Below, in pieces: positions 1 to 34,317 of a stretch of 64,000 bases of DNA; within the stretch, counting starts at the first letter, position 1; every line of letters starts with the position of its first letter. Source of the DNA: Thalia democratica. Taxonomy: Eukaryota. The stretch is from contig OZ241834.1 of assembly GCA_965202585.1 (NCBI GenBank), forward strand, positions 19,778,001-19,842,000, given 5' to 3'. The notes beneath the pieces were generated by a model. That model saw only the letters and a program-made list of their open reading frames with translations, was not told the DNA's origin and did no database searches. Made by a program: the position numbers and the translations under genes.

Positions 1-2771
1 CTTTTCATAATCAATCTCAAAACTTTTTGTTACAACTGTAAAAGATCTTAAACGATAATTTACAATAAAAAAAGCTAATTAAACGTTCATAAATTTTTCA
101 ACAGTTTTTTTAAATTTAAAGTATCTTTTGTTACTTAAAACAAATTTTTAATTTTTTTGAAATTAACAAAAGTTTTCTGTAAAAACATTATTAAATTGAT
201 AACAAACAAATTTTTTGTTGGTTTCAAAAAAATGTTCGCTAAAAAGTATGAGCTAAAAAAGGAAGCTCCTATTAAGCAACTTGTTTAGTTATTTTATTAT
301 GCATAATTTTAGAGCTTTAAAAAAAAAAAAAATTAAATACATAAAACACTTGTAGAATTTAATTTTGTTATTTAATACACTCATTAATAAAATCTACTTT
401 TTGTATAATGTAAAGAAAATGTGTAAAAATAGCATTAGTTAAAGAAGGTAGCAAAAAATCAAATATTCTATATTTTATAACAAAATAAAAAGATATCATG
501 TTTGTTTTTAAAGCTTTTCTTCAAATGGCCTTAAATATTTAATGTTAAAAAATTGTTTTAAATAAAAAAACTTCGCGTACTGGACTAAATATTTTTTAAT
601 ACTTCGTTTTTGATATGCAAAACTAAAAATAACATAATAGATTTATTTAAGAGTTTCTTAGTATTGTCTCTATATATTTTGTATAATTTTAAGTTTTGTC
701 GTTTTAAATTTTACAATTCACCATAAACTTGCTTACAACAAACAAAGTTTGAAATAATTTTACCAAAACATTTATTTATACTTAACTAATTATTTAGTTA
801 TCAAAAATCACAAACTTAAATAAGTTTTTATAGTTTACAAAATCTTACACTCTTCACTTGATTTTAAGTGCTTATTAACGCTTAAATAATAATCGTTTTT
901 ATTTTGTTTGTAGTTTTTACAACTATTTGTTTTTTAAAAATTACGCGGGAAGATGAAGTACTTTTGCACACTTTTTATTTAGTAAATCACGCTTACAGGT
1001 TTTCTATTTTAGTATGAATAAAAAACATCACAAACAACTTATTTTGCTTTGTAAATATGGCGTTGGTTATTTAGATTAAACGAAACCACATAAAAAGTTA
1101 TTTTTATGACCTAAAAGTTTAAATAGTTTTCAACTTGTTTATTTAAAAAAAGTAAAAAAGTAAATTATTTGTAGTAATAAAATCTATTGAGTTTACAAAT
1201 TTTTTCATTTAGACATACAATAAACTAATTGTTTATTCTTGCTTTGTAGATACCTCATTTTTTATCTAAATAAAACAAAAACGTCTAGAAATTATTTATT
1301 TTAATCTTAATGTCCAACAAGATTTTTACGCGTTTGTTCAAGTAAATACGTTTCCAATAAATTTGGTTAAGCTTATAACATGGGTCGGCAAGCAGTTGGT
1401 TACTTGTGTTCCAGGATAAGGAATATTTTTTAATGGTCAAAACAAGCGCCTGAATGACTTCTGTGGCGAAATTCTTGTGGTAAATCATTTGTGTGGAAGT
1501 AGTTCCAATTTTAGGCTTCAGACACAGATTGGCTAATATCAACTTTATTGATAAAAAAGCTGCAAGTATTCTGAAAATAGTTTTTTTTTATTGCAGCGCA
1601 TTTTGTAGTAAATAGAACTGTATATAACAATACAGTGCATATGAGTTATAAAACAAGCTCTTTACTTTTATTACGTATTATCTTTGAAAGTATTTGATAT
1701 AGTTTAAACCAGTGTTTTCACAGTGTTCACCTAAGTAGTATGCATATAAATGTTATACTGCACAAAATAAAGTAAGTAAAGTGAAAAGTTTGTTTTCAAC
1801 TGGCGTTTGATTTGTCTTATTCTGTTAGAAAAAACTAACTATAACGAAAACAATCAGTTTACACATAGTTTATACATTAACTAATCAACACAGAAAATAA
1901 AGTAGGGCATTTAGATAAGAATATAATTTTTATAGTCTAGTGAGCACAGAACTTATTTTTCTGTAATTTTATGTGCACAGCTTTTTAATAAGTGGAAGAT
2001 CACTGGTCTAGGCTGTAACTAAAAAGAAAGAAAATTAAATATAAAAAAATTTCACAACACTCATTTAATATCTTTATTTTGTTCTTGTTTAGTTTTTTAG
2101 TTTAATATTTTTAATTTCCAATAATTAAGTAGTTAATATAAAAGTATAGCGTATAAAAAATTATTTTCATATATTTAAGGTTAATTCTACACTTTAAAAA
2201 ATAAAAGTAGTCATAAATTTGTTTTCAAATTACTAAAAAACTGTTTAAAAGACTACATTTATAACGTAATATTAAAAAATATTTTTAGACTTGATAATTT
2301 CTAAAAATCTATACCTATTCATCTATATCCTGAAGGGTTATGTCTTGTGCCTACCTGTGTTCCAGGATAAGGAATATTTTACAATGATCAAAACAAGCGC
2401 CTGAATGACTTCTGTGGCGCTGCTTTTTGTTGCATGAAAACAGCTTTGTTAAAAAACTTGTTGTTTTTGAAAGTTTGTTTGCAGTGGTTGAGGTTAAAAA
2501 AAAATTCACTTTCTTATTTTGATAGTTTTTTTTCATAACTAACAATGCTTTATTAAAAAAAGACAGCTTTTTCTCATTTAATAGATGGTTGATTTATGAA
2601 ATTTTGTTTATAGTATTGATTAATTTTATTTAAACTAGATACTAATAATTTTGTTTAAAAAAATTTTTTGTCTGCATTCTATAAGAAAAATTATCTGGAC
2701 CTTCCATATAAGCATTTGGTGTATTAAAAATTTTTCTCAAAAGAAAAAAAAAACTCTTCACTTATGGCCAG

Positions 2772-2922
2772 CATCAGACAATCCTCAATTAGAGTTCGAT
2801 TCCAATTGAGGCGCGGTAAAATTTAACTCATTTGAGAATCATCATACCGCAGTCATCATTTGATGATCTTACTGGTCTACTACTTGAGTAGACGCGGGTA
2901 AGGATCACCCATACTGAAGAGT
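2772..2922 (-). ncRNA. SNORD118: U8 (SNORD118)-type box C/D snoRNA, copy 1 (variant)
   Basis: The minus strand reads ACUCUUCAGUAUGGGUGAUCCUUACCCG, then the GUCUACU/AGUAGAC hairpin, box C AUGAUGA, the GCGGUA/UACCGC stem, the CCUCAAUUGGA/UCUAAUUGAGG stem, and GUCUGA (box D). Motif order matches vertebrate U8 as recalled (UCAG..GGG..AUCCUUACCUG...AUGAUGA...GCAAC loop...GUCUGA). Confidence 0.8.
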
Positions 2923-4701
2923 GGAATTATCTGTCAACTGTCTGTTAATATTTTATTGCATGCAAGTAATAATTTGCTTGTGACGTCATAGTACACTAGA
3001 ACGTTTTGCTTCGTTGCACACGCACACGAAAGAGAATTAAAGTACAGTAGGGTTTGATTTATATAAAAAGTAAATTTTTGTTGTGATTAAGATTAATATT
3101 TTAGTAAGATTAAACTATCTTTTTGGTATTTTACAAAATATTTTATAACGAATTCTTAGAGTTTTAACTTAAAAAAAATCATATTTCTAAGTTATTTTTT
3201 AAATTTATTTTAACAAAAATAAATATTATTATAGTTTATCTTTAGAAAACTAAGTATATATTTTAAGTATGTGTAACGAAATAATTAAGATTGTAAAATC
3301 AACAAATATTTTTTCATAGCCACTAGCAACTTAAAAAGTCTAATGACCAGACCAGCTAATTTAGTTCTATTTCGGTTCATTATTTTAAATCATAGTTTTG
3401 TAAAAGTTTGTTCAACAAATTTCCTTTTCTTTGACAATCGATTTTAAATAAAGTACATGAAACGTAGATGATGTTTTCAGATTTTAAAATAAGTAATATT
3501 TTAGCTTCGTTTTGTTTATATCGTTAAAAGTTTTATTTTTAAACTTGTTTGTACTTCGAGATAAGTCATATTTTTCTATGCTTAGTTTTAAGATAGTTAT
3601 TATGCTACTAGTATTCTATTTCTTTTTTTTCGTATATGTAAAAAAACTGTTCTCGATAATGTTAAAATCGCTTTATTAAGGCATTTTAGGATTTTTCATG
3701 TTATTTAGATGTACCAAAATCATTAAAACGCATTAACAGTATTTAAATTATAAAAAATTATCAAAAACTTTTTTTGCCGATCGTATAAAAAAAATAACCA
3801 GGAAACAATTTTGTTAGGTACTTTAAAAAAATAATTTATTGAAAAGTAAAACCCAAACAAGTGTTACAAAAAACAAGTTAAAACTTTTATTTATATCAGA
3901 AAATACTTCTAAATTATTTATACCTTTTAGTTTAATTACTGTGTAACGAACCATATTAGAAGATATAAGTTTATGATTCTGTTACCTTACTAGTTTTTAT
4001 TTACTAAAATTTATTACAAATTCCTTCATCTTTTACGTAAACTCATCACTTGCATAAAATAAATTTAGTAATTTTCAAGTAATGTGTGTTTTTACTCAAG
4101 TTCAACCATGCTCAACTAAAGTAAACACGTGAAAGTAGTAACAGCGTGACTAACAATGAATAATTAAGGTAAAACGTTGTTATAATTATTTTTTGTATCA
4201 CTTTAAATGTTTCATAAATTGTAGTATATAAGTCTCAAGTTATATAACTTTAAATATAACAAGTTAATTTAGTTAATGTAAAAGCTCGCGTTTTACTTAT
4301 ACATATACTATTGATAAAGACTAGTAGGGTATTTTTCTATTTAAAGTTTTTTTGTTTAAGTTTAGGGCTAATTTTTTATTAAATTGATATAGTTTATTCA
4401 ACGATAAAAAAGGCGCTTAGATATCTATTCCAAAGACCTAGTGCACAAAGAACCTTTCGGTTATCGAGTCGCACATCAAATATACCTTTTAATGCCTTGT
4501 CCAGGACAAAACGAAACGTTAAAGCGTTTTAGCTTAGTTATATCAAGCTTAGTTGTTTTGGCTTAGTTGTTTTAAGCTGTTACTTTTTGAATACTTTTCA
4601 GACAATAGCTAATAAGTTTAGAAAGGTTGTTTCAAAGCTAAAAAAAATACTTGTGCTATTTCACTAGTTTGAAGTTCTAGTTGATTATATTTCAATAGCT
4701 C

Positions 4702-5689
4702 CAAAGTGGGCTGAAAATAGGGCTCAAGTGGCCATTGATTATAAAATATAATATTTTGAAAAGAAAATCAAATTATGTGTTAAACACAGTTAAGAAGAAC
4801 TTTATTTCTTTGTTTCAAAATTGGTTTTGTTACATTTCTGCTTCAAGTATTTGATAAGTCATGTAAGTTTAAAGTCAACCAGGGTTTGCCTTTTGCAGTG
4901 TAGAAAACTACTGAAAATTCTTCATAGTTTTGTTGAAAAATTTGCTTGCAGAAAGTTACAAAAAAATAAATGAAATAATTATAAACATTTTTTTCCTTTT
5001 GTTTAAAATGGTTTGTTCTATATCAAAAAAAAAAAAAGTTATTTAAAAACTAAAAGTATTAGACTTTTTTTGATATTTAAAAATTATTTTTTTCTAAATA
5101 ATAAGTAAATAGGCATCAAAATATCGCTTGTATAAACCTAAAAATATAGTTGTATACTCCTCGATAGATTTTTTAAAAGTTTTGTCTATAGATTTCTTGT
5201 CGTGTTAGCTAAAAAATAGGAAAAAATATGCCAACGATGAGTTTTTTAAGATATTTAACGTTTAAAAATACCCTATATTACCCTAAAAACACCAATGAAA
5301 TTCCGGGTAATTGAGCAATTTTATAAATAAATAAAAAATACTTTTTTTATATTAAGTCAAAAAATTTATTTTTCAAATTAAACTAATCCAAAGAAAATAA
5401 ATCTAAAAAAAATATCTGCTGTACTTATTCATTTTAAGGTGTATTTTATCACTTACTGTAAGACTTATTCATTGACATAAATTTTAGGGTTATTCGGGTT
5501 ATTTTTTTTAACTTCAAAATAGCAAAAATTTAATACATTTAATTTGACGTACCTTTTTATATATTTGAGGATGATTAAACTGAACCCAACTTTTAAAAGA
5601 AGAAACCTATCTCTACACACTTAAATAAAACTCTTAGTTTAATTTTTTAGTCACTAAAATGTTCAATGTCCGTTTGCCAGCCCACTGTG
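4702..5689 (-). mobile_element. Non-autonomous Transib-like DNA element (988 bp)
   Basis: Termini CAAAGTGGGCTG...CAGCCCACTGTG. 5-bp flanks are AGCTC/TGCTC, and the paralogous site in the right duplication arm reads TGCTC. The end CACAGTGGGCWGGCAA is shared with 15283-16170. Confidence 0.6.
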
Positions 5690-6415
5690 TGCTCATCATT
5701 TAAGTGGTTTAAATACTTCAAAAAAAAGTATCTATACAAGTTTTCATTCAGATCTTGTATTATCAGCTTGAAGTTTAAAAGATAAGTATAAATTAAAATA
5801 CATTTTAAAAACCCACGGTCATAAAGTAGAAAGCAAATAAAAACAAGCCATGCAGTACAAAAGTAAACAAAAGTCTTCTTTCAGTATAGATAAGTCTACC
5901 AAAGTTGTATGTTATTGTTGTTTAAATGTTAACCTAAAAGTTTAAAACAATTTATAAAGTTATGCGTTAGTTTGTTATCACGAGTCAAAAAATATGATAC
6001 GAGAAATAAAAAAAAAAACAAAGTTATAAAAGTTAAGCATTATTACATCCAAACGCTAATTTATTTTGAAAAGGCTATTTTAACTTAAGTTTATTTAAAA
6101 ACTATCAATGTTTTCATGAGCGTTTAGTAAAACTGAGATTGTTTGCTTTTGGTTTTATTAAAATGGTTTCGTTTATAAGAACAACAAAGTATACTTAATT
6201 TAGTTTTAAAAGACTTGAACAGTTTATAAATAGTTCTTATAAACCAAAGCAGTTTTTTAATAAGTTAAATAAAAGTGTAAAAAAGATACTTAGTGCCTAA
6301 AATAAAAACTAATCCCAAATAAAAAAATATTTTCGCTTTTATCATTAAAATTTATAGAATAATATAGTTTGTGAGGGTACAAAAACCACAACAAGACGAG
6401 CGTCTTACTTGGATA

Positions 6416-8194
6416 ATGCAGGTGAACATTTCGAAACAAATGGAAATTTACGAACGTGCCCCAAACTTTTACAGTTGGGAAGAAATGAAGCCGCTCATCC
6501 CCAAGTTAAAACAGCAGGGGTTGGAGCAGTTCGTCCACAATTACACGAGAATGCGGGGTCGAGGGGACTACCCGTTTAAATGGGGCGATGAGATCGAACA
6601 GTTGATCGTCAGAGTGGACGATGAAGCCGAGACGGTCAAGTTGGTACTGAAGGCGACTGAAGTCCTCGAAAAGCTGAAAAAGTTCAACGAGACGCTGGAT
6701 GAGGAGGATCGGATCTGCTGGCAGATGGAATCGAGCGAGTTTCAGGCGGAGAGCACGCCGGGTCAACCTTTTGGAAGCTCGGTGGACGATCTGGCAAAAG
6801 TTGAGGCTAACATGAAGGCCAGAAGGGACCAAATAAACAGTTGTCTGGGCGAAAACGAAAAAATGGTGACCATGACCACATACCCGCTGATTGGCTGCGG
6901 GAACTTTACCGTACCTGCCTTGCAAGTTGGGCCAGAAGACGAAAACCCACTAACGAGATCGATATTTTTCCACGACGACGCCTGCAGCACTTCGCCGGCT
7001 TACAGAGCATGGCATTTTAATATGATGATAAGAAAAGGATCCAAGATCGTCGGCAACGTTCCGGTTTACAAGGACAAAAACATAAGGCTTCCGTTCAGAG
7101 AAAACTTTGGGCGGAAAGAAGACCGGGACGCTAGCAAGGAAGGTCACATCTATCTAGACAGCGTTTGGGTCGCCTACAGCAGCTGCTGCCTTCAAACCAC
7201 CGTTCAGCTGGCTGACTTGGACCAGTGCAAGAAAGTGTACGACCAGCTCGTGGCAATTTCGCCAATTTTGATGGCCATGAGCGCCTCCAGCCCCTTTTTT
7301 CGCGGCTTCGTCTCAGACGTGGACACCAGATGGACGATGATGGTGCAGTGCAACGACGATCGGACGCGAGAAGAAACGAAAACGGTGAAGAGCTCGCGTT
7401 GGGACTCGGCGGATATGTTCTTGCGCGAAGACCATCTCAAGCTCAACGACATTCCCGCTTCGTACGACCAAGAAGCGTTCGATTTTCTCATTTCGCGAGG
7501 TGTCGACGAGGCCGTGTCGAGGCACGTCGCCCATGTTTGGGTGCGAGACCCGTACATCGTGTCGAATGAAAACTCGGACGTTGAAGAGAGCTACTGCTAC
7601 TTCGAGCACATGAACAGTTCCGTCTATCGACCGGTGAGGTTCAAGCCGCCACCCGGACCGAAGTCGCCGATCGGCTGGAGGTGCGAGTTCCGTGTCTTGG
7701 AAATTCAACCGAGCGATTTCGAAAACGCCGCTTTTACCACGTTCGTGGTACTGTTGGTCAGGGCTTTCGCGAAGTTTGACGTGGACATGACTACTCCACT
7801 GACTGGGCATCACTCGAACATGGACAAGGCGCAAAAGAGGGACGCCGTCAGGACGCAAAAGTTCAGCTTTCCCGGCAAACTGCAAGTTGGTGGTGGTGAG
7901 AAAGGAAATGTGGTGCTGATGTCTGCAGACAAAATTATAAACGGCGACGGAGGAGACTTCATCGGGCTGATCGGGCTCGTTAAAGAGTATTTGAAGAGTG
8001 AATCTCACATCGTTGAAACTTCAGAGAAGCTCAGCGCTTACATGAGCCACTTGAGCGGCATAGCTTCAGGCGAGACGCTCACGATGGCGCAGAAAATGAG
8101 GCGGTTCGTTGAAGATCACGAAGATTACAAAGGAGACAGCGTGTTGAATCACAAGATCAACTACGACATGATGAAAGCTTTGTGGGACGTTTGA
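6416..8194 (+). CDS. GCLC: Glutamate-cysteine ligase catalytic subunit family protein (eukaryotic GCS type), intronless, with a divergent substrate pocket
   Basis: Motifs YSWEE, KWGDEIE, ESTPGQPFG, NVPVYKD, HIYLD..CCLQ, SDVDTRW, RFKPPP, IGWRCEFR, DFENAAF align with animal and yeast GCLC. The start is ATG 6416 or 6440; the ORF-track GTG at 6371 is unlikely. Stop TGA. Confidence 0.9.
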   Translation: MQVNISKQMEIYERAPNFYSWEEMKPLIPKLKQQGLEQFVHNYTRMRGRGDYPFKWGDEIEQLIVRVDDEAETVKLVLKATEVLEKLKKFNETLDEEDRICWQMESSEFQAESTPGQPFGSSVDDLAKVEANMKARRDQINSCLGENEKMVTMTTYPLIGCGNFTVPALQVGPEDENPLTRSIFFHDDACSTSPAYRAWHFNMMIRKGSKIVGNVPVYKDKNIRLPFRENFGRKEDRDASKEGHIYLDSVWVAYSSCCLQTTVQLADLDQCKKVYDQLVAISPILMAMSASSPFFRGFVSDVDTRWTMMVQCNDDRTREETKTVKSSRWDSADMFLREDHLKLNDIPASYDQEAFDFLISRGVDEAVSRHVAHVWVRDPYIVSNENSDVEESYCYFEHMNSSVYRPVRFKPPPGPKSPIGWRCEFRVLEIQPSDFENAAFTTFVVLLVRAFAKFDVDMTTPLTGHHSNMDKAQKRDAVRTQKFSFPGKLQVGGGEKGNVVLMSADKIINGDGGDFIGLIGLVKEYLKSESHIVETSEKLSAYMSHLSGIASGETLTMAQKMRRFVEDHEDYKGDSVLNHKINYDMMKALWDV

Positions 8195-9727
8195 TAGTAT
8201 TGATTTGTATAAAGTGATCTTAAAATATGCAATACAATCGGTTCTTTTTGGTCAATAAACTTTGCCTAGAGAGTAACTTTTGCTTGTACAAGTTAAATAA
8301 TTGTGTTGTCTTTTGTAAAAATACGTTTTATACATTCAACAAATTTTTTGATTAGACAAAGGTAAAAGTATCAAAAGACAGTTATTATCTTAATGGGTGT
8401 TATAAAGAATGCATAACAGTTGTTAAAATTTCTATAATTGATTAAAACTTACTTTAAAACTTACACATTTTGGTCATCAATTCATATAGTTATGTGCGGA
8501 GAAAAAATCCATATTAGTACTTAAATTTATTTTTTATTTAAACTTCAAGATATAAGTTGTAAACTAGATTTAACAGTAATTTAACGTGAATTATTTACTT
8601 TTAGCATATATTATTTTAAAGTAGATGGTAGCATATCAATTGAAATTTAGAAAGTTTATATAAGATATTTAACTATAGTTTATATGATTTTATTTACATA
8701 ATCGAATATATGAATTTTAAATTGATAATTAACTTTTGTGTAGTTTCAAAGATTTTTAAGTATAAAAAGGAAAATTAAAACTTATACTTAGACTATAAAG
8801 CAAATGTTTGTACTTAATTAAAGTTGTCTTTTTATATGTTTTAGGTACTATAAATTTCATATAAAATAAGCTAAAATTGAAATGGTTTTTAGTCTAGCTA
8901 AGTTAACACTTTTCAATAATTTTTTAATCTTTGTTTATATACTCAAAAACACTTCAAAATAAGCTAATATAATTTTGGTAAATTTGAATTTTTTTAAATA
9001 GCTTCACATAAACGATTCAATGTGATTCTAAGTTTATTTCAAAACCAGATTTTTGCAGAGGTATTACTACAATTACTCTTCGGTCAAGATAAACTGTTTA
9101 TAATAAAAAAGCTTAAAATAACTGAATGGTTTATTAATCTTTGTTCATAAACTGTGTTTCGTTTTGTTTAAAAACTTAAAAGACAATTAGAACCATATGA
9201 ATAACTTTCTTCATAGTTTTTAAAGTCGCAAAACAGTAAAAAGTAGGGTTTAAATTAGGAATTTATTCTGTTAATATCTGTATTAGTAGAAATATTTTTT
9301 TTAAATACTTTTAACACGGCTTTTATAAGTTATTTTCACAATTTTTTTCTTTTTTAAGGTATCAAAGTCGTTACAAGTTTCAGATATTTACACATTAATA
9401 AATTATTAAAGATCATTTCGTTAATCGCCTAATATTAAAAAAATATATATATTTACAAAGATTAAATTTAGTAAAACCGATTATATAAATCCAAAACAAA
9501 AGTAACTATACTACTAAAAAAAAACAAGTGTTACAGGAAATCGTTTGAAATTTTAAGTTTGTATTGAAAAATATTTTCGAATAATATATTTATTCAGCTA
9601 ATTTTAACTATCAGTTTAGTTGTTTTATAATAAACTAAACTCGATAATATAAGTCTAACTGTTAATAAAAAAAAAGGTTTAATTGTTTGCTAACAAAAGA
9701 TCCTAGTGAAGAAACTTCACTGGAAAA

Positions 9728-11623
9728 TAAATAAAAACAAATTGTACAGTAATCTTCCTTTATTGTACCAACATATGTTTCTGTGTGTTAACAAATCAAC
9801 ACACTTCAACTGGGTTCTGTAAAAATATAATTACTGTAATGAAATAAAAGAAGCATAGAGTAAAGTAGGTGTATACATGTTTTCATTAAAATATTTTTTT
9901 TTTACATATAATAGTTAGTAATAGGTAAAATACTTAATATTAAATCCGACTGTTATAAAACTATATAATATTTGTGATTATTAAGTCTAAAATAAGTAAA
10001 GTAAACTAAAATACACAACAAAACAACAAATAATAATATAAATAAACAACTCACGATAATGGAAAGAAAAACTTATTCAAACTTTACTGTTGTTAATAAA
10101 TGAACAAAATACATTCATTACATCTAATAATTACGTCACAATATAAATGAGGTTATTTCAACTATTTAATTAGTATTGCAAAGTATGTTAATTTAGGTTT
10201 TATGTTTGTAATCTATTTTGAACAAAATAAAACAAATATGTTAGTTCAAATGTAAAAACCAAAATTGAAAAATTAAAATTTAAGAAAACAAAACACAAAA
10301 AAAAAAAACTTGTTATTGAGCTTACAAAGTACTGAACGATAATTAAGTTACAGGGACATACATAAAATCACAATGACTTAAATTACATATATATTGTATT
10401 TAATAACTATTAAAATAATTGATTGATAAAGTAGCAGTCGGTAGTGTGTACACAACCGACGGTTCTTCTTCAAATAACACCTTGGCGCTTTCTCACCCTC
10501 CATATTTTTCATCCACCTTTCACATACACACACACATTCATTTAACATATATTAATAAAATTATATATCTCAAGTAATATATAGTTTTAATCAATTATTA
10601 TTTATATATCTATTTCGCATAAGTCACTTTCTATTACCGACATTTCAATATTCATTTTACCCTCGGACTATAATTCTTCACACCTTTATGTGTTAAGTTC
10701 CAAGTTTAATTTGAAGCCTGTATTCAAATCACAGATAAACCGTGCTTTTTTACCTACTACGCCCAAGAGAGCTAGTAGGTTTTTTACTGCAGGTTTATAC
10801 TTAGCATATGACCACCTCGTTGTTTTACATTTTAACTTTCATATATAATACAGTTTACTTACTTAATATTTAAAATATATGTATGGGATATTTAATTTAA
10901 ACACCCAACTGCTACTTTATCAATCAACTATTGTAATAGTTATTAAATACAATATATATATATGTAATTTAAGTCATTGTGATTTTATGTGTGTCCCTGT
11001 AACTTAATTATCGTTCAGTACTTTGTAAGCTCAATAACAAGTTTTTTTTTTTTTGTGTTTTGTTTTCTTACATTTTAATTTTTCAATTTTGATTTTTACA
11101 TTTGAACTAACATATTTGTTTTATTTTGTTCAAAATAGATTACAAACATAAAAACTAAATTAACATACTTTGTAATACTAATTAAATAGTTGAAATAACC
11201 TCATTTATATTGTGATGTAATTATTAGATGAAATGAATGTATTTTGTTCATTTATTAACAACAGTAAAATTTGAATCAATTTTTCTTTACATTAACATGA
11301 GTTGTTTGTTTATATTATTATTTGTTGTTTTGTTGTGTATTTTAGTTTACTTTACTTATTTTAGACTTAATAATCACAAACATTATATAGTTTTATAACA
11401 GTCGGATTTAATATTAAGTATTTTACCTATTATTAACTATTATCTGTAGAAAATATTTTATTTTAATGAAAACATGTTAACACCTACTTTACTCTATGCT
11501 TCTATTATTTCATTACATTAATTATTTTTTACAGAACCCAGTTGAAGTGTGTTGATTCGTTAACAAACAGAAACATATGTTGGTACAATAAAGGAAGATT
11601 ACTGTACAATCTGTTTTTATTTA
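9728..11623. repeat. Long inverted repeat: about 715-bp arms (9728-10441 and 10907-11623) around a 465-bp spacer
   Basis: The arms are reverse complements at roughly 95% identity by eye, e.g. TTGTACAGTAATCTTCCTTTATTGTACCAACATATG at 9742 and its reverse complement ending near 11610. Confidence 0.92.
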
Positions 11624-16309: not shown

Positions 16310-17887
16310 ATGCCAAAAAAAGCCATCAAGCGCAAGTCGACGTCCAACACCAGCAAAAAAGTCGCCGCCAAAAAATCCGACAGCAAAAAGCCAACAGAAG
16401 CCGCCACCACTTCCGAATGCAAAAAGACTTGCTTGCCACCCATCGACAACGAATGCAGGTTGTGGCGCAGCGATCAGTACGAAGTTTACGCGGAAAACGG
16501 AACGGTTTACAACGCGATGCTCAACCAGACCAACATCAAAGACAACAACAACAAGTTCTACGTGCTGCAGGTCATCAAGGAAAAGGACGTGGACCGTTAC
16601 TGGGTCTACAACAAGTGGGGCAGGATCGGTCGCACCGTGGGCGACGATTTGAAGAGGTTCGACTCTGGTAAAGAGGCGGCGATCAAAGACTTTACTAAAA
16701 AGTTTCAGTTGAAAACAGGCAACAAGTGGGGCGGCGAGTTCAAGAAGAAAAACAAAAAGTACGACTTGATCGAGGTCGACTACTCGGAAAAGGAGGAGGA
16801 AGAAGAAAAACCTGTGGCAGACGTCAAGAAAAGCAACGCGGCGTCAAACTTGGACCTGAAACTGCAAGAGCTGATGAAGATGATATTTGACGTGAGCGAA
16901 TGGGAGCGGTCCATGACGGACTTAGGCTTCGACGTTAAAAAGTCGCCACTGGGAAAGCTGACCAAGGCGCAAGTCAAGGTGGGTTACGAGACTCTGAAGC
17001 GCGTGGCTGCCATCATCGACACGAAGAACAAAGCCGGCCTCGAGGCTGCCTGCAGCGAGTTTTACACGCGAATTCCACACAACTTCGGTATGAAGAGGCC
17101 GACGATAATAAGAACCCACGCCCAGGTCAAGGAAAAAATACAGCTGCTCGAGTCACTCGACGACGTTCAATCCGGAATGGAAATAGTGAAGTCGGACGCG
17201 GGAGGGGAAGTTTGCGTGTTGGACAGCTACTACAAGTCGCTCAACTGCGAGCTGAAGCCCCTGAACCGCCAGTCTTCAGATTACAAGCTGGTGGACGAGT
17301 TCGTGAGCAACACCCACGCCCCGACCCACTCCGCGTACGAGCTCCAGCTGATGGACGTGTACGACGTCAACAGAGTGTCCGACAGCACCAGGTACCAGAA
17401 GAGCCTCAGCCCCAAGATGCTCCTCTGGCACGGGTCGCGCCTGATGAACTGGTGCGGTATTTTGAGCCAGGGGCTGCGGATCGCGCCGCCGGAGGCGCCG
17501 GTGAGCGGGTACATGTTCGGAAAGGGGGTTTATTTCGCGGACATGGTGTCCAAGTCGGCGAACTACTGCCGCGCGTCCAAGAGAAGCCCCTACGGCTTGC
17601 TGCTGCTGTGCGAGGTGGCCGTGGGCAGCATGAACGAGAAGCTGCAGGCGGATTACCATGCCAACGAGCTGCCCAGCGGTAAGCACAGCACGAAGGGGGT
17701 GGGCAGGACTTCGCCGGACGACGGGGCGAGCAGGGTGCTGGGCGAAGACGTTAAAGTGCCGCTGGGAAAACCGAAGGTTCAGGAGGTGCGGGGCGGCTAC
17801 CTGCTGTACAACGAGTACATCGTCTATGACGTCACACAGGTCAAGCCGAAGTACCTCGTAAAAGTCAAGTTCAATTTTAAGTACTAG
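16310..17887 (+). CDS. PARP2: PARP2-like poly(ADP-ribose) polymerase (basic N-tail, WGR, regulatory helical domain, catalytic domain), intronless, 525 aa
   Basis: WGR domain (YNAMLNQTNI..NNNKFY, WGRIG), helical domain (SPLGKL, FYTRIPH), and catalytic LLWHGSR, IAPPEAPVSGYMFGKGVYFADMVSKSANYC, LLYNEYIVY give an intact H-Y-E triad and a PARP1/2-type D-loop. No zinc fingers or BRCT domain. Confidence 0.9.
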   Translation: MPKKAIKRKSTSNTSKKVAAKKSDSKKPTEAATTSECKKTCLPPIDNECRLWRSDQYEVYAENGTVYNAMLNQTNIKDNNNKFYVLQVIKEKDVDRYWVYNKWGRIGRTVGDDLKRFDSGKEAAIKDFTKKFQLKTGNKWGGEFKKKNKKYDLIEVDYSEKEEEEEKPVADVKKSNAASNLDLKLQELMKMIFDVSEWERSMTDLGFDVKKSPLGKLTKAQVKVGYETLKRVAAIIDTKNKAGLEAACSEFYTRIPHNFGMKRPTIIRTHAQVKEKIQLLESLDDVQSGMEIVKSDAGGEVCVLDSYYKSLNCELKPLNRQSSDYKLVDEFVSNTHAPTHSAYELQLMDVYDVNRVSDSTRYQKSLSPKMLLWHGSRLMNWCGILSQGLRIAPPEAPVSGYMFGKGVYFADMVSKSANYCRASKRSPYGLLLLCEVAVGSMNEKLQADYHANELPSGKHSTKGVGRTSPDDGASRVLGEDVKVPLGKPKVQEVRGGYLLYNEYIVYDVTQVKPKYLVKVKFNFKY

Positions 17888-18986: not shown

Positions 18987-19834
18987 ATCTAAACCATTTT
19001 TTTACTAAACCATTGTACTTTCGACTAAGGCTTATTAATAACTGAATTCTAGTAAATTTAACTGAAGTAAAAGTATACTGTGGTCAAAAGTTTATAAGTT
19101 TATAAAATATAAAATTACGAAATGATCGAGTAAAGAGTTGGGATTTAAAAATTAACTAAAGTTTTAAAGCTAAATAAATACAATACGGTTGACTAATTAA
19201 AATTATTAGATTTAATATCATACTAAAATGAACTTTGAATTGATAATAAAATTTACAAACAAAGTTGCACTTGTCAAAACAATTACCATAAAACTACTTG
19301 AAATAAAGATTTAAAAAATCTAGACTGATAAAAAAGTGTTTCAGCTTACATAAACTGAGCTTTAATGACTAAATACATAAGGCTTCCAGAATATGTAGCA
19401 CATACGTTCTCATAACTTTAATAAATAAATAAATAATTCATATAGAAACTAGTTAAAATAACACTGACTGGTAAATAACTAAAACTTTAGTATTTAGGCA
19501 TAAATAACATACATACCTAAGACATTTTTATAGAATAAAGTAGAATAAAATCTATAAAAACATAATAATTATATTTTAACTGATTATTTTTTAATTTTTG
19601 TTCTACTTCTATTATTTATGCATTTATTACAGAGTAGTCTTTATCAGAATTACTTTAAACACATCTGAATGTTTCAGAAACTATATTATTTTATTGATAA
19701 TTTTCCATATTATAACATAGTACTTCATATACTTAATAATCATTTGTAATAAGCTTTAAATTAAATTATTTTTTTATTTTTTTAGTTGCAAGTATAGAAG
19801 GAAAAATCCGAATTTAGCATATTGATATTAGATA

Positions 19835-20690
19835 AATTATACTAACTCGACGACTGATGGCGACAGCGGCGGCCCGGTCACAAACGATCATGACGACAGT
19901 TTGCACGGTGTATTGTCATCGGGGACTCCCCGGTGGATGCCGCTACAGTAACTCGGTGACGGAGATTAAACTTTTGCTATATGTGGACAATTTCATCGAA
20001 AACACTATAAAGTCGCAGACGCCGGAGCAGACGATATTGCAGCAGAGCTCTTTATAAAATCCCAGCTTTATTGCTGCCCTGCTGTCAGGGAACGCGGCGG
20101 CGAAAAGCGGCGAAGTTTACTTCACCAGGTGCAGCGGGGCTTTTTTGATGAAAACTTTGTATCGCCACCGGCCACTGCGTGCAGGGGTGCAACTACGGCG
20201 ACGGAAGATATGGATCCCTGCGAGCTTTCCGACAGGAGGAGGCGACCAAGAGACCAGGTTAGCGGCCGCGTGGTATCTTCGCGACGGCGTGGCGCTTGTC
20301 TACTTCCGGGAGACGTTTGAAATTGTCGACATGCTCAGGCTGCCAAAGGAAGCGCATATGAACAGCTGGGAAGAGTGCAGTCTATGTCAGATGGGGATGA
20401 GCTACTTTAACCCGCTGACGGGCGACGCCAGGCACGGAAGTGTCGAAGCGGCGCTGAAGTGAGAGATGATGTCGGTGGAAGCAAGTTTTGAAGACGACGG
20501 CGAGATCACGGTCAAAGCTGAGGACGGGTTCACGTCTCATTCTGGCGTCGTGTCGTACTGGCGCGACGACGAAGAAGGCGAGGTTGGGAGGATTCTGGCT
20601 TTGGAGTTTGACAGAGAGAACGAGATCGATTATTCTTCTACTAAGACGCCGAGAATAGATGATAATTGGCTGCGCAGAGGAAGTCAATAG
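19835..20690 (+). pseudogene. Decayed tandem trypsin-like (S1) serine protease: C-terminal part of one domain plus most of a second
   Basis: Across frameshifts: GDSGGPV..LHGVLSSG (19859-19924), GC..YVDNFIENTIK (19935-20010), NPSFIAALL..RCSGAFL, IATGHCV (20161-20181), RDGVALV..LP (about 20280-20345). In-frame stops TAA 20055 and TGA 20460. Confidence 0.7.
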
Positions 20691-21069
20691 GCTGGAAGCG
20701 AAAGGAAAGGTTAAGGAGTTGAAGTTGCTCTGTCTTTCCAAGAGAAAGATTTAATCAAGAAACTGTATTTCTATTTAAATGTATGAGTGAGATATAACAA
20801 CTTTGAAAAGTGTATAACGTGCAAGTAATAAATTTATGTTTAAATATTAATTGGTTTTTTATAACAGAATCATTCTAATTTATTTTGTCAGTTACTAATA
20901 TGTAGCACCATTTACCAAAAACACCACGCGCCGCCATAAATTTGTTCAAACAAAACTTTTTTTTTAGTTACCAAACTTAATATGCTTAATTAAACAAAGT
21001 TAATACCTCTGAAAATGTTTTTTTCCATTTCAACAAGCTTATCTTATTTTGAAAGTCAAATACAAGCTT

Positions 21070-21100: not shown

Positions 21101-22832
21101 ACACTCAAATCTGTCTAAGACACAGTTAACGATATTTTTCATTTTTTCATAAACTTATATCATCGAGTTTTGTTTATAATGTAATAAATGATAGTTAAAA
21201 ATAACTAAGTAGTATACATTTAAAAAATATTTTCCAGTACAAATTTTAATTGGTTTTTAGTAACTTTTGTTTTTTTTTTCTAGTAATACAGTTGTTCTTG
21301 TTATAATTTTTCACATTCGGTTTTACAAAAATACTAAAGTTTAATCTTTGTAAACATTTTTTTACACGATCGGCGAAAAACAGAATAGTTTTTAATAATT
21401 TATTATTAAATTTATATTACAATCTATTTTGGTCCTTTGACCAAACGTTTTGAGCGTATTTTTGTCGTTCATTAAACAATAATATTAACATGTAGTAATT
21501 TTTGACTTGTAACGACTTTGTTATCTTAGAAAAAAAAAAAAAAGTGAAAATAAGTTATAAAAGTAATGTTAAAAATAATTTAAAAAAATTGTCTACAAAT
21601 ACAGTAATAAACAGAATTAAATGCTAATTTCAGCCCTAACTTTTTTACTGTTTTATAGCTTTAAAAACTATTAAAAAGCTATTTATATGGTTCTAATTGT
21701 TTTTTAAGTTTTTAAACACAACGGAACACGTTTTATGAACAAATATTAATAAACCGTTCAGTTATCAAAACTTTATTCCATACTAGAATTTTGCAGTGGT
21801 AACAATTTAAATACTCTTCGGTCAAAATAAACTGTTTATTTTAACAGAAGAGCACCGGTAGTAATACCACCGCAAAACTCTAGTTTTGGATTAAGCTTAA
21901 AATCACAATTTTTTTTATCTGAAGCTCTTTAAATTTTTTTAATTGAGCAAAACTATATTAGATTATTTTAAAGTGTTTTTGTTATATGAACAAAAATTAA
22001 AAAAGTTTTGAAAAAGAATTACCTTAGTAAGACTAAAAACTATTTCGATTTTAGCTTATTATACATTAAATTAAAAGTATTTAAAAATTATAAAGTGACA
22101 GCTTTAACTAACTACAATCATTTTCTCTATAGTCTAAGTACAAGTTTAAAGTTTTATTTTTTTATACTGATAAACTTAAGAGGTTTGTAAAACAAAACTG
22201 TTAAAACAAAAACATTTAAGATAGTAGAAAATTTACCTGAAACAAAATTAAATAAAAAGTACATTACAAAATTACGACAATAAACGACATTGTGTGTATT
22301 TCCATTATATATTAGAAAATTAAATATACTATAGTGTAGTTAGTAGTCGTTTTTGTTATTTCGTATAAATTTATTAGCTTCCAATTGATCTGTTACAATC
22401 TACTTTAAAATTTAATATATATAAAAGTAAATAATTTACGTTTAATTACTGTCAAATCTAGTTTCCAACTTATATCTTGAAGTTTAAGAAAAAATCGATA
22501 AAAATACTAATACAGTATTTTCTACGCACATACTTGTATGACTTGATAATTAAAATGTGTAAGTTTTAAGGTAAGTTTTGAGCATTTCTAAAAAGTTTAA
22601 AACTGTTATGTATTCTTTACAACACCTGTTAACTGACTTTTAATACATTTAACTTCGTTTAATTTTGAAAGCTAGTATATATATAATTATGAATATAAAA
22701 AGTAGTTTTACAAATAACATCACAATTAGTTAACTATAGTCAAGCAAAAGTTACTCTACATGCAAACCTTACATGCTAAAAAAAATTGACTGTATTGCAT
22801 ATTTTAAGATCGCTGTATACAAATCAATACTA

Positions 22833-23819
22833 TCAAACGTCCCACAAAGCCTTCATCATGTCGTAGTTGATCTTGTGATTCAACACGCTGTCTCCTTTGT
22901 AATCTTCGTGATCTTCAACGAACCGTCTCATTTTCTGCGCCATCGTGAGCGTCTCGCCTGAAGCTATGCCGCCTAAGTGGCTCATGTAAGCGCTGAGCTT
23001 CTCTGAAGTTTCAACGGTGTGAGCTTCACTCTTCAAATACTCTTTAACGAGCCCGATCAGCCCGATGAAGTCTTTCCCGTCGCCGTTTATAATTTTGTCT
23101 GCAGATATCAGCACCACATTTCCTTTCTCACCACCACCAACTTGCAGTTTGCCGGGAAAGCTGAACTTTTGCGTCCTGACGGCGTCCCTCTTTTGCGCCT
23201 TGTCCATGTTCGAGTGATGCCCAAACAGGGGAGTGGTCAAGTCCACGTCAAACTTCGCGAAAGCCCTGACCAACAGCACCACGAACGTGGCAAAAGCGGC
23301 GTTTTCGAAATCGCTCGGTTGAATTTCCAAGACACGGAACTCGCACCTCCAGCCGATCGGCGACTTCGGTCCGGGAGGCGGCTTGAACCTCACCGGTCGA
23401 TAGACGGAACTGTTCATGTGCTCGAAGTAGCAGTAGCTCTCTTCAGCGTCCGAGTTTTCATTGGACACGAGGAACGGGTCTCGCACCCAAACATGGGCGA
23501 CGTGCCTCGACACGGCCTCGTCGACACCTCGAGAAATGAGAAAATCGAACACTTGTCGGTCGTACGAAACAGGAACGTCGTTGAGCTTGAGGTGATCTTC
23601 GCGCAAGAACATATCCGCCGAGTCCCAACGCGAGCTCTTCACCGTTTTCGTTTCTTCTCGCGTCCGATCGTCGTTGCACTGCACCATCATCGTCCATCTG
23701 GTGTCCACGTCTGACACGAAGCCGCGAAAAAAGGGGCTGGAGGCGCTCATGGCCATCAAAATTGGCGAAATTGCCACGAGCTGGTCGTACACTTTCTTGC
23801 ACTGGTCCAAGTCGGCCAT
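22833..23819 (-). pseudogene. GCLC: 5'-truncated GCLC-family paralogue; open 328-aa ORF covering only the C-terminal half
   Basis: 16 amino-acid differences over 327 residues versus 7211-8194. The N-terminal half (WGDE and E..E metal ligands, CCLQ) and the native upstream region are deleted. Confidence 0.8.
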
Positions 23820-26059
23820 TTAATAAATAAAGTCTTCAAGTTAATTTGTAGTTTTTAAATAGCTTATCTTATAAATGCTATACATTATACTATTTTAAAC
23901 AAAAATAGTAAAAAAGATTTTTGTAAATAAGTTTTTCATCTATTTTTCTGTAACTTTATTCAAGTAGATTTTTGGACAAAACTATGAAGAGTTTTGAGTA
24001 CTTTCAACACTGTAAAAGGCAAAAACTGGTTGGATTTAAACTTAAATAACTTTTCAAATACTTTAAGCAGAAAGTAACAAAACCATTTTTGAAACGAAGA
24101 AATCAAGCTCAGTTTAACTATATTGAACACTTATTTTGATTTTTTATTGAGCATTTTTTTTAACAGTCAATGGCTGCTTGAACCCTGTTTTCAGCCAACT
24201 TAGGAGCAATTAAAATATACTTGACTAGAATTTCAAACGATAAAATAGCACAAATAATTTTTTTTAGCTTTGAAATAACTTTTCTAAAGTTATTACCTTA
24301 ATTCTGATATATATACAAAAACTAAAAGCTTGAAACAACTAAGCTAAAACAACTTAGCTAAATCAACTAAGCTAAAACAACTAATAAAACGTTTAAACGA
24401 CCCGCCATGTCCTGAACAAGAGTGACGTTTAGTTGACAAGAGAGAAGACATGCTTTGTTTCAAAGCATCCGTGGCGTGCGACTCGATAACCGAAAGGTTC
24501 TGCACTGTTCAAGTCTCGTGAACCTTGGACTAAATATTTTGAATGTCTTTTTTGTCGATCATTAAATTATAATAATATCATAAACAATTAAACAAAAACT
24601 CAAACAAAAAATGTAGATAGAAAAATGTCCTAGTAGTCTTTATCAATAGTATATGTATGAATAAATGGCAAGCTTTCACATTAACTTAAGTAAATTGCTA
24701 TATTCAAAATTATATAGCTTGAGACCTTTCTACTACAATCTATGAAACATTTAAAGTGATACAAAAATTATTTTTAGTAATGTTGTACCTTAATTCATTG
24801 TTAGTCATGCTGTTTTTACTTTCAAGTTTTTACTTTATATGAGTACGGTTGAAGTTGAATAAAAATGCACATGGCTAAATTATTTTATTTTTATATACTA
24901 AATTTATTTCATGCAAGTAATGAACTTGCGTTAAAGATAAAGGAGTTTGTAAAAATTTAAAATAAATAAAAAACTAATAAGAAATAAAATCATAAATTTA
25001 TATCTTCTAGTATGTTTGTTACATAATATTTAAACTGACAAGTATAAATAATTATAGTAAAAATACATAACTTAAGAATATTTGTTGACATTAACTACAG
25101 TTTTAAACTTGTTTTTGTAACACTTAATCGTTTTTTTTGTGGTTGTTCACTTATTTGTGTTTTACTTTTTAAGAGTTTGTTTTCTTAAATACCTAAATAA
25201 ATTGTTTCATTCTATTTTTTAAACGATCGGCGTAAAATAAAAGGTTTTTGACTTAAATATACTTTTAACGCGTCAAATTTTTTTTAAACACTTAAAAAAA
25301 AAGACAAAATCCTAAAATGAATGATTGAATTTTTAAAAAAGATGTTAACCAAAAAATTTTTTTTCACATATACACAAAAAATAGAAATAGAGTACTAGTA
25401 GCAAAATAACTGTCTTCAAACTAAGGAAAGAAAAATATGGTTATTACAGAAGTACAAAAAAGTATAAAATTAAAACTTTTATCAATATCAACAAAACGAT
25501 ATTAAAACACTATTTGTTTTTTTAGGTGAAAAGCTTACTAGCAAAAATTAAAAAAGTAATGAATATACCTAAACATCATGAACTTATTTAAAATTTTTTA
25601 GCGTTTGTTGATGTAAAATTATAATTCTAACAAATGAAGGGGAATAAAACAAAGAATTGTTCAAAGTTTTAAAACTTTTTAAAATGTGAGTGGTTTTAAA
25701 GAAAACGTTTGTTGGTTTTACCAGCTTAATTATTTTGGTAAACATACTAATTTTTTTTTTTCTAATTATAAACTAAGATGATAATTTTTTAATTTCACTA
25801 AACAAAAAAATAAGTTAAATTCTCATTTGTAGTAAAAGTAAAATTCTAAGAAGTTCTTATAAAGTATTTTGTCGCATACCAAAACGATAATTTGATTAAA
25901 AATCAAAAACTTACTTTTTTGAAACCAAACCCTACTGTACTTTAATTCTCTTTCATGTGCGTGTGCAATGAAGCGAAACGTTCTAGTTTACTATGACGTC
26001 ACAAGCAAATTATTACTTGCATGCAATAAAATATTAACAGACAGTTGACAGTTATCACC

Positions 26060-26211
26060 ACTCTTCAGTATAGGTGATCCTTACCTGCGTTTACTCAAGT
26101 AGTAGACCAGTAAGATCATCAAATGATGACTGCGGTATGATGATTCTCATATGAGTTATATTCTACCGCGCCTCAATTGGAATCGCAACTCTAATTGAGG
26201 ATTGTCTGATG
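26060..26211 (+). ncRNA. SNORD118: U8 (SNORD118)-type snoRNA, copy 2
   Basis: ACUCUUCAGUAUAGGUGAUCCUUACCUG, hairpin, AUGAUGA, stems GCGGUA/UACCGC and CCUCAAUUGGA/UCUAAUUGAGG with a GCAAC loop, box D CUGA at 26206-26209. Confidence 0.85.
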
Positions 26212-28118
26212 CTAGCCATGACTGAAGAGTTTTTATCTTTTGAGAAAGATTTTTAATACATTAAATGCTTATATGAAAATTCCCGGTAAATTTTTCTTAT
26301 AGAATGCAGTTAAAAATTATTTGAAACAGAAGTAATAGTATCTAGTTTAAATGAAACTTAGCAATACTATGAATAAAATTTCATAAATCAACCATATATT
26401 AAATGAGAAAAAGCTGTCTTTTTAATAAAGCATTGTTAGTTATGAAAAAAACTATCAAAATAAAAAGTTAAAATAAAATACTCTTTTTAAACCTCAACCA
26501 CTGCAAACAAACTTTCGAAAACAACAAGTTTTTTAACAAAGCTGTTTTCATGCAACAAACAGCAGCGCCACAGAAGTCATTCAGGCGCTTGTTTTGACCA
26601 TTGAAAAATATTCCTTATTCTGGAACACAAGTAGGCACAAGACATCACCCTTCAGGATATAGATGAATAGGTATAGATTTTTATAAGTTATCAAGTTTAA
26701 AAATATTTTTTAATATTACGTTATAAATGTAGTCTTTTAAACAGTTTTTTAGTAATTTGAAAAAAAAATTATGACTATTATTATTTTTTAAAGTGTAGAA
26801 TTAACCTTAAATATATGAAAATAATTTTTTATACGCTATCCTTTTATATTAACTACTAAATTATTGGAAATTGAAAATATTAAACTAAAAAACTAAACAA
26901 GAACAAAATAAAGATGTTAAATGAGTATTGTGAAACTTTTTTATATTGAATTTTCTTTCTTTTTAGTTACACCTTAGACCATTGATCTTCTGCTTATTAA
27001 AAAGCTGTGCTCATTAAATTACAGAAAAATAAGTACTGTGCTCACTAGACTATAAAAGTATAAATTCTTGTCTAAATTCCCTCTATTTTATTTTCTATAT
27101 TGATTAGTTAATGTATAAATAATTTGTAAACTGATTGTTTTCGTTATAGTTAGTTTTTTCTAACAGAATGAGGCAAATCAAACGCCAGTTAAAAAACAAA
27201 CTTTTACTTTACTTACTCTATCTTGTGCAGTATAACATTCATAAGCACACTACTTAGGTGAACACTGTGAAGACACTGGTTCAAACTATATCAAATACTT
27301 TTGAAAATAACACGTGATAAAAGTAAGAGCTTTTTTTTAACTCATATACACTGTATAGTTATATACAGTTCTATTTACTACAAAATGCGCTGCAATAAAA
27401 AAAAAACTATTTTCAGAGTACTTGCAGCTTCTTTATCAATAAAGTTGATATCAGCCAATCTGTGTCTGAAGCCTAAAACTGGAACTACTTCCTCACAAAT
27501 AATAAAAACTACAGTCATTTTTACAAAAACTAAATTAACTAAACAGAAACTTAGAATCATCAATTAGAATAAATCTAATGCAAAAATTAAAAGCATCAAA
27601 AAAGAAAAGTAGTAAATTTTATACTCACTTATACAAAAATTAAAATACATCAAGCGTACTAACAAGCATCTAGTTTTAAACAAAAAATAACAATTTTTTG
27701 AGTAGTCTTTTATTAGAAAACTGTCTTATTAATAAAGCATAACTATTTAGGAAAACACCCTTAATAAAGCAAAAAAATGCTAAGAATTTTTTTTTAACCT
27801 CAAACACTACAAACAAACTTTCGAAAATAACAAGTTATTTAACAAAGCTGTTTTCATGCAACAAAAAGCAGCGTTACAGAAGTCCTTCAGGCGCTTGTTT
27901 TGACCATTGAAAAATAAACCTTATATTAATTTTTAGATAAACAAGATTTTAGTTCTGAGTTATCAAAATAAAACTTGGAAGTTTGCTTTGAACTAAAGTT
28001 GTAAGTCTTATTTAGAAGTGAATTGTTTTTAATTGATAGCCCTATGTAGTTTAAATAAAAAAGTTCCGAGTTATTGAAAAGAAAATCAAAGCATTTTGTT
28101 AAATGTAAAAACTGTGAA

Positions 28119-34165: not shown

Positions 34166-34317
34166 ACTCTTCAGTATGGGTGATCCTTACCTGCGTCTAC
34201 TCAAGTAGTAGACCAGTAAGATCATCAAATGATGACTGCGGTATGATGATTCTCACATGAGTTATATTCTACCGCGCCTCAATTGGAATCGCAACTCTGA
34301 TTGAGGATTGTCTGATG
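34166..34317 (+). ncRNA. SNORD118: U8 (SNORD118)-type snoRNA, copy 3 (best consensus match)
   Basis: ACUCUUCAGUAUGGGUGAUCCUUACCUG, hairpin 34195-34213, box C 34229-34235, stem 34238-34275, stem 34277-34306 with a GCAAC loop, box D 34312-34315. Confidence 0.88.

Follow-up and report, generated by a model that had tools for sequence, protein, structure and literature searches.

The catalytic subunit of eukaryotic glutamate-cysteine ligase (GCLC) is regarded as a single-function enzyme with an active site that is frozen from fungi to humans. No paralogue of eukaryotic GCLC with a different, dedicated activity is known to us, and a literature search for one found none. The canonical enzyme makes gamma-glutamyl peptides under cysteine starvation (bioRxiv 10.1101/2020.05.29.123802). 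Its scaffold can join glutamate to non-cysteine acceptors, although there the unmodified enzyme does so as a side reaction, without a genetically fixed, remodelled pocket. Here we describe an intact GCLC-derived ligase gene in a 64,000-nucleotide stretch of the Thalia democratica genome (contig OZ241834.1, positions 19,778,001 to 19,842,000), which we call the window. Neofunctionalisation within a paralogue family, with a changed acceptor or specificity, is the reading that the data support best, and we regard its chances as about even.

A second point of comparison comes from the next enzyme of the glutathione pathway. The glutathione synthetase (GS)-like effectors of cyst nematodes are neofunctionalised GS paralogues (PMC5919673). 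As in the case described here, a housekeeping ligase of the glutathione pathway gave rise to a family in which the fold is kept and the active site altered, and the biochemical activity of the nematode proteins is changed or unknown (PMC5919673). The nematode effectors differ in being derived from the ATP-grasp enzyme of the second step and in being secreted with signal peptides; we saw neither a signal peptide in the window protein nor an effector context. Compared with canonical eukaryotic GCLC, the window protein shares the domain, the fold, the Mg2+ and ATP ligands and the arginine for the gamma-carboxylate of glutamate. However, its identity with individual canonical GCLCs reaches only 36-44%, compared with 56-66% among the canonical enzymes of tunicates and vertebrates. 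The gene is also multi-copy and intronless, and it is without the canonical C-terminal tail and the cysteine of the TRC motif.

Gene structure and fold

From its first ATG (6416) the enclosing open frame (6371..8194, plus strand) runs through 592 codons without an internal stop. The residue aligned with Met9 (ATG 6440) is the start in relatives, and Met9 is therefore the likelier true start. The sequence strings on which the initial annotation was built were all found in the protein: WGDEIE at residues 56-61, WQMESSEFQAES at 102-113, SPAY at 193-196, DSVWVAYSSCCLQ at 248-260, DTRW at 303-306, SRWDS at 327-331, HMNSSVYRPVRFK at 398-410 and EFR at 424-426. RNA contigs of at least 90% likeness end at about 8213, short of the candidate polyadenylation signal downstream (Table 1). 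High identity between the two copies of the gene in the window extends to 8286 and then ends. The gene forms a 1.8-kb island with 52% GC and a GC content at third codon positions (GC3) of 0.67, while the surrounding DNA has 22-23% GC. This composition agrees with the description of Thalia democratica, where a genome GC of 25.3% and a coding sequence about 17 points higher are reported (PMC13746493).

The protein is clearly a homologue of the eukaryotic glutamate-cysteine ligase (GCL) catalytic subunit (GCL group 3). The Pfam GCS profile (PF03074) matches over positions 1-369 of 372 with 346.9 bits (cut-off 25; E 2.2e-103), and a phmmer sequence search finds yeast Gsh1 (3IG5) with E 1.2e-64. 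An AlphaFold2 model made from a 42-sequence alignment has a mean predicted local distance difference test score of 91.9 and a predicted TM-score of 0.92. Its top match in the PDB is again 3IG5 (Foldseek E 6e-45, TMq 0.88), with YbdK (TMq 0.45), plant and bacterial GCLs far behind. The GCS2 profile (PF04107) stays below its gathering score, with 18.6 bits against 21 over a match of only 58 residues.

Kept and replaced residues

Alignment to yeast Gsh1 with HMMER gave a gap-free numbering in which the yeast position is the window position minus 9 in the first block and plus 8 around Q268. As a measure of conservation we used 125 canonical GCLCs from animals, fungi and protists, in which 130 columns are at least 95% conserved, and compared them with a clade of five members, the window protein included (the D clade). 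Ten residues of the catalytic centre are kept in all five: window D58, E59, E61, E105, E112, Q260, R305, K410, E424 and R426, which correspond to yeast D49, E50, E52, E96, E103, Q268, R313, K451, E470 and R472. Q268, R313 and E470 presumably have catalytic-site roles. For the others we relied on the contacts between yeast enzyme and substrates listed in PMC5613772 (Table 3): D49 and K451 contact ADP, E50, E52, E96 and E103 contact Mg2+, and E52 and R472 contact the amino group or gamma-carboxylate of glutamate. All of them are kept in the window protein. The proposal that the catalytic core is intact is thus supported, with all Mg and ATP ligands and the ligand of the glutamate gamma-carboxylate in place.

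Outside this core the protein has changed strongly. Each clade member carries 26-30 deviations at the 130 conserved columns, compared with a median of 1 and a maximum of 13 in canonical sequences; 90 columns are kept in all five members and 19 are changed in all five. Ten of these 19 are fixed (L54F, Y62Q, R195A, I203M, G255S, K326S, Y329W, Q400N, V423C and R486P). The clearest case is R195, yeast R196 of the HPRF motif, which is Arg in 125 of 125 canonical sequences and Ala in the clade. Around the second-substrate site and the glycine-rich loop that covers it (GFGMG in canonical GCLC), replacements affect yeast positions H194 (Ser or Tyr in the clade), R196, F197 (Tyr), R205 (Met or Leu) and F260-G263 (Val-Ala-Tyr-Ser). 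Further replacements lie at V321, K359 (Ser), Y362, H436, Q441 (Asn), N444 (Val or Thr) and W445. The last is Tyr or Phe in three of the five members, and two retain Trp. We take the replaced residues other than W445 to lie in the cysteine site or its second shell. The yeast numbering that the initial annotation gives for the cysteine site falls on residues that are changed in the window protein: Y97 to Ser, R196 to Ala, F197 to Tyr, M258 to Val, M262 to Tyr and W445 to Tyr. In the yeast enzyme Trp445 and Glu96 contact the cysteine moiety (PMC5613772 Table 3).

The changes are not confined to the acceptor side. Yeast Tyr362 of the SRY motif is a ligand of the glutamate alpha-carboxylate (PMC5613772 Table 3). 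This column is Trp in all five members and Tyr in 97% of canonical sequences; Phe or Trp also occur in a few canonical-looking sequences, and the residue may be non-essential. Tyr362 is a glutamate ligand and not an acceptor residue, therefore the change is not purely acceptor-side. In the C-terminal domain, the TRC-motif position occupied by Cys in 79% of canonical GCLCs is Glu, Lys or Arg in the clade, R549 (the Arg of KRASGE) is Ile or Val, the conserved W560 is Lys, and the window protein ends at least about 45 residues before the canonical C-termini. We take the TRC cysteine to be human C553, which is linked to pairing with the modifier subunit GCLM. It had been proposed that the acceptor site is changed at every position and that the change is focused on the pocket. 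The number of deviations and the loss of normally invariant substrate-site motifs bear out the core of this view. A change at every position was nevertheless too strong a wording, as columns 103, 107, 108 and 111 vary among canonical GCLCs as well. The focus on the pocket holds by and large, but a glutamate ligand and the C-terminal domain are affected too. Overall, the second-substrate site, its covering loop and the C-terminal region have undergone rebuilding, and they continue to evolve.

Selection, expression and copy number

The nearest proteins are Tara Oceans sequences at 88, 86, 73 and 70% identity, and this narrow clade was seen only in Tara Oceans data. Neither a word-indexed search nor an HMMER scan run exhaustively over 1.84 billion cluster representatives found any intermediates; after the clade come ordinary GCLCs at 38-42%. 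Two of the relatives sit on metagenomic DNA contigs as uninterrupted GC-rich open reading frames (ORFs) with AT-rich flanks, as in the window. The other two lie on Joint Genome Institute (JGI) contigs of about 2 kb with short AT-rich untranslated regions (UTRs), one of which stops soon after an AATAAA; these contigs were taken as transcripts. Pairwise dN/dS inside the clade is 0.11-0.24 at dS values from 0.33 to more than 1, and all five frames are intact. The clade is thus under purifying selection and not in neutral decay, in line with the initial annotation, which had argued against decay of the window gene.

Sequencing runs were mapped onto positions 5400-9400. The organism A and organism B runs cover the gene and both flanks and are therefore genomic DNA; they gave 201 and 238 contig pieces, most with 90-99% identity over the ORF. 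In these runs the ORF reaches a summed word depth 4-10 times as high as the unique flank contig, which points to the existence of several diverged gene copies. Such a multi-copy state is unusual for a housekeeping GCLC. The metatranscriptome X12 covers only 6606-8213, with flanks near zero (depth 1.2 in one bin). Since the ORF is covered without its flanks, genes of the D type are transcribed in the sea. X12 contains several distinct 3' ends, one of them identical to that of the transcript of relative P0003.

Origin from a thaliacean GCLC

Related pelagic tunicates possess a fully canonical GCLC with every canonical motif present (P0007 and P0241-P0243), and the window gene is therefore the derived form. 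P0007 comes from run ERR6349556, which also gives a PARP homologue (P0124, 61% identical to the PARP of the window). P0241-P0243 come from JGI contigs, and P0241 also from a Logan run assembly. Identity of the four proteins is 63-66% with ascidian GCLC and 56-58% with the vertebrate enzyme. In the tree the canonical sequences reproduce the tunicate phylogeny, with the pelagic group as sister to Phlebobranchia plus Aplousobranchia. The position of the D clade in this tree is unresolved, its stem being 2.58 substitutions per site long compared with about 0.3 for the canonical thaliacean stem. In the approximately unbiased (AU) test, joining the D clade and the pelagic tunicate group in one clade costs 1.4 log-likelihood units and is not rejected (p 0.48). 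We also counted shared rare states, defined by a frequency of at most 15% elsewhere, a count that is insensitive to long branches. With the pelagic canonical group the D clade has 24 of them in common; ascidians share 8 with it, vertebrates 2 and the six control groups 1-6. The D clade has the tunicate-wide states W375, V427 and Q559 as well. From the shared states and the AU test it follows that the D protein descends from a thaliacean GCLC, and is neither an ancient paralogue nor foreign. No single canonical thaliacean sequence stood out clearly as closest to the D clade.

In the 64-kb window we found no exon of a canonical GCLC. A scan of metagenome contigs with an alignment of thaliacean GCLCs gave nothing but unrelated eukaryotic GCLCs, none above 55% identity over the full length; contigs L081 and L082 are not thaliacean-specific.

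Some observations concern the structure of the canonical genes. Two marine metagenome contigs (L085 and L086) carry pieces of a canonical thaliacean GCLC of the P0242 type, in several short exons separated by short AT-rich introns. The exons have about 40% GC in DNA of 28% GC, a composition that differs from the window genes. The canonical thaliacean gene is intron-rich and the D-type gene without introns. P0241 has a GC3 of 0.73, like the window genes, and a 3' UTR with 46-52% GC. Its transcript (L011 1-48, L013 1-47) opens with a remnant of a template-switch oligo, followed by ATTCTATTTGAATAAG. We take ATTCTATTTGAATAAG to be the 16-nt ascidian spliced leader, in which case the canonical GCLC mRNA of P0241 would be trans-spliced. 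A leader of this kind is absent from the 5' ends of the D-type transcripts L002 and L005 as assembled.

Proposed function and alternatives

After its descent from the thaliacean GCLC lineage the D clade went through a burst of change, and purifying selection has maintained it since then in five or more related species or copies. In the scenario that we favour, glutamate and ATP would still give gamma-glutamyl phosphate, and judged from the residues that are kept, the enzyme very probably still catalyses the first half-reaction. The acyl phosphate would then react with a nucleophile that is not L-cysteine, or with a wider range of nucleophiles. The loss of four conserved basic residues (R196, R205, K359 and window R486) is a hint that the acceptor may have no alpha-carboxylate or may carry an extra positive charge, as an amine for example; this part of the proposal is speculative. 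The gamma-glutamyl-amine ligases of the glutamine synthetase family, such as 1-naphthylamine glutamine synthetase (PDB 8X6Z), show that a Glu-activating ligase of the superfamily can accept an amine. They belong to another family of distantly related fold, with a weak Foldseek match (E about 4e-4) and about 9% identity, and provide a mechanistic analogy only. Because the TRC cysteine and the Arg and Trp of the C-terminal domain are replaced and at least the last 45 residues are missing, the enzyme would probably be active without the modifier subunit.

The neofunctionalisation proposed in the initial annotation thus gains from kept catalysis, changed substrate-site motifs, selection, transcription and the canonical GCLC of relatives, but in a form in which the change is not limited to the acceptor. 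A paralogue family beside a canonical GCLC is the most likely arrangement. Several points weigh against a new activity. Thirty of the 40 changed conserved columns are still variable inside the clade, which fits relaxed constraint equally well. The assignment of replaced residues to the pocket lining rests on motif position, one contact table (PMC5613772) and the yeast numbering of the initial annotation. Canonical GCLC is already promiscuous for its acceptor (bioRxiv 10.1101/2020.05.29.123802), and a shifted pocket need not give a new product. Finally, the canonical GCLC is demonstrated in related species and not in this genome, so that the gene could be the only GCLC of the organism.

This last point leads to the strongest alternative, which we judge unlikely but still serious. 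The gene would be the sole GCLC of Thalia-type salps, a fast-evolved orthologue with compensating changes in the pocket that still makes gamma-glutamylcysteine for glutathione. The retention of all catalytic residues, the expression of the clade and its purifying selection would be expected here as well, and so would descent from a thaliacean GCLC. PMC5174732 describes salps as fast-evolving. The adjoining PARP2-like gene (Table 1) is intronless too, and the absence of introns is therefore no mark of a retro-paralogue. However, GCLC normally evolves more slowly than PARP2. Between thaliaceans and ascidians the canonical GCLC is 65% identical and PARP2 52-54%, whereas for the D clade the order is inverted, with 41% for GCLC and 61-65% for PARP. 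Inside the clade the inversion persists (88% compared with 94%), which argues for a lasting change of constraint and not only a burst. A sole GCLC would furthermore have lost residues that are invariant from fungi to vertebrates, R196 foremost, and it would be a multi-copy gene in which the pocket columns keep varying inside the clade.

It is less probable again, and in our view clearly unlikely, that the D proteins are relaxed or regulatory paralogues with little or no ligase activity, either pseudoenzymes or drifting duplicates, whose reading frame is held open by gene conversion. The variability of changed columns and the replacement of Tyr362 would fit, as would the signs of conversion in the window, where coding sequence is 96.7% identical between copies and flanks 69-80%, and where the shortened copy keeps an open frame. 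Conversion within a genome can, however, not account for a dN/dS of 0.11-0.24 at dS values up to more than 1. Invariant Mg and ATP ligands in all five members, the 90 of 130 conserved columns that are kept and the substantial metatranscriptome depth over the ORF speak against it as well.

A foreign origin, by horizontal transfer or from an integrated virus or transposon, was rejected as highly improbable: the GC contrast, the intronless frame and the location in duplicated DNA would fit it, but the tunicate PARP2-like neighbour and exon-like islands elsewhere in the window show the same contrast, which matches the published description of Thalia democratica (PMC13746493), the rare states are those of thaliacean and tunicate GCLC, and the 1.84 billion representatives contained no closer non-tunicate donor.

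Inverted duplication and other features of the window

The window contains a second, partial copy of the gene on the opposite strand, and both copies lie in the arms of an inverted duplication (Table 1).

Table 1. Coordinates of the features described, counted from the first nucleotide of the window
Feature	Position	Strand	Remarks
D-type GCLC-derived ligase gene	6416..8194	+	intact, intronless, 592 aa; stop codon 8192-8194
Candidate polyadenylation signal AATAAA	8254..8259	+	read from sequence; 60 nt past the stop codon
Left arm of inverted segmental duplication	1484..9657	.	carries the full gene; found by blastn and repeat search
PARP2-like gene	16310..17887	+	Pfam WGR, regulatory and catalytic domains; intact, intronless, GC3 0.79; in the spacer between the arms
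Right arm of inverted segmental duplication	21150..27503	.	without an equivalent of left 5072-7208
Partial gene copy	22833..23819	-	codons 265-592, open frame of 328 aa, 94.8% aa identity to the C-terminal part

Three blocks of the left arm (1484-5071, 7209-8660 and 8753-9657) have counterparts in the right arm, where their order is inverted. A clean deletion of 2.1 kb has taken from the right arm the upstream region together with the initial 793 bp (264 codons) of the coding sequence. The duplicated DNA also comprises flanking sequence, about 1.4 kb on the 3' side and 3.6 kb upstream; a retrocopy origin of the partial copy was therefore rejected in favour of a segmental inverted duplication with a later deletion. 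Compared with the full copy, the partial copy has a dN/dS of 0.33 at a dS of 0.076. Its N-terminal 264 residues, with all Mg-binding glutamates, are gone, so that it is probably a pseudogene remnant. The excess of coding over flank identity between the arms suggests gene conversion among family members, or constraint. Sequences resembling U8 small nucleolar RNA (Rfam RF00096, 48-58 bits, gathering score 41) were seen at 2773-2920 (minus strand), 26062-26210 (plus) and 34168-34316 (plus). Each of them sits in a repeat of about 300 nt, and two are inside the duplication arms. An inverted repeat with the look of a foldback element lies at 9898-10308 and 11043-11453 (411 nt, 96% complementary, spacer of 734 nt).

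The PARP2-like gene has no functional link to the ligase and served as a taxonomic marker. Its best named matches are from Ciona, Styela and Clavelina (48-50%). In the tree it falls inside the tunicates, after Styela, together with four marine sequences. This place is the published position of Thaliacea. Relatives with 83-94% identity occur on many marine metagenome contigs, again as uninterrupted ORFs. Also in the spacer between the arms is a 950-bp island of 52% GC (19801-20750). It lacks any ORF of at least 120 aa and any Pfam match and does not resemble the GCL or PARP genes. It could correspond to a transcript that is untranslated or non-coding, or else to a gene in decay.

Further away, positions 41451-54900 hold a chain of islands of 150-1250 bp (42-52% GC) in AT-rich DNA that resembles a multi-exon gene. 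The ORFs 49527-51002 and 52696-53757 in this chain, both on the plus strand, have no Pfam match. Among the ORFs 28119-29267 and 57983-58444, both on the minus strand, one encodes two LDL-receptor class A repeats and the other matches a GIY-YIG nuclease with E 2e-4. The GIY-YIG match is just under the Pfam cut-off, and the ORF is possibly part of a Penelope-like or other mobile element.

Recurrent divergent copies

The canonical set itself contained outliers that are divergent copies: a B copy of Clavelina lepadiformis (P0011), Btru_050935 of Bulinus truncatus (P0054), and one sequence each from Dysidea avara (P0080) and Ceratobasidium sp. (P0089). In Clavelina (P0244) and Bulinus we also found a canonical GCLC of the same species; that of Bulinus bears the consecutive locus tag Btru_050936 on the same contig. 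Like the salp clade, each of the four copies sits on an accelerated branch. They differ in having 8-13 deviations where the clade has 26-30, in keeping R196 throughout and in being of independent origin. Between 6 and 9 of their 8-13 deviations are in columns that are also changed in the salp clade (hypergeometric p 0.001-0.016), the overlapping columns being 193, 203, 204, 253-255, 263, 313, 326, 329, 400, 403 and 486. Against the idea of a common remodelling, the shared columns may merely be the least constrained of the conserved set. We know of no functional characterisation of any of the four copies. To judge from their sequences, they may represent a recurrent, uncharacterised class of GCLC derivatives.

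Taken together with the salp data this allows a wider, more tentative proposal, to which we give somewhat less than an even chance. Thalia-type salps would have evolved a multi-copy ligase family from their own GCLC that joins glutamate to a non-cysteine acceptor, possibly an amine without an alpha-carboxylate. The remodelling of the same specificity columns in independent duplicates would then mark a recurrent class of gamma-glutamyl ligases.

Significance

If the gene were instead the sole GCLC of its organism, residues thought to be essential for the synthesis of gamma-glutamylcysteine would be dispensable. If a non-cysteine acceptor holds true, the eukaryotic GCL family would have its first case of a new, dedicated activity. 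Together with the cases from Clavelina, Bulinus, Dysidea and Ceratobasidium, the salp gene hints at a recurring re-purposing of GCLC. A selected, expressed and multi-copy derivative of this kind is a natural experiment on the acceptor specificity of GCL and on its feedback or modifier control. It also provides a lead to a possible gamma-glutamyl metabolite in an ecologically important, bloom-forming animal.

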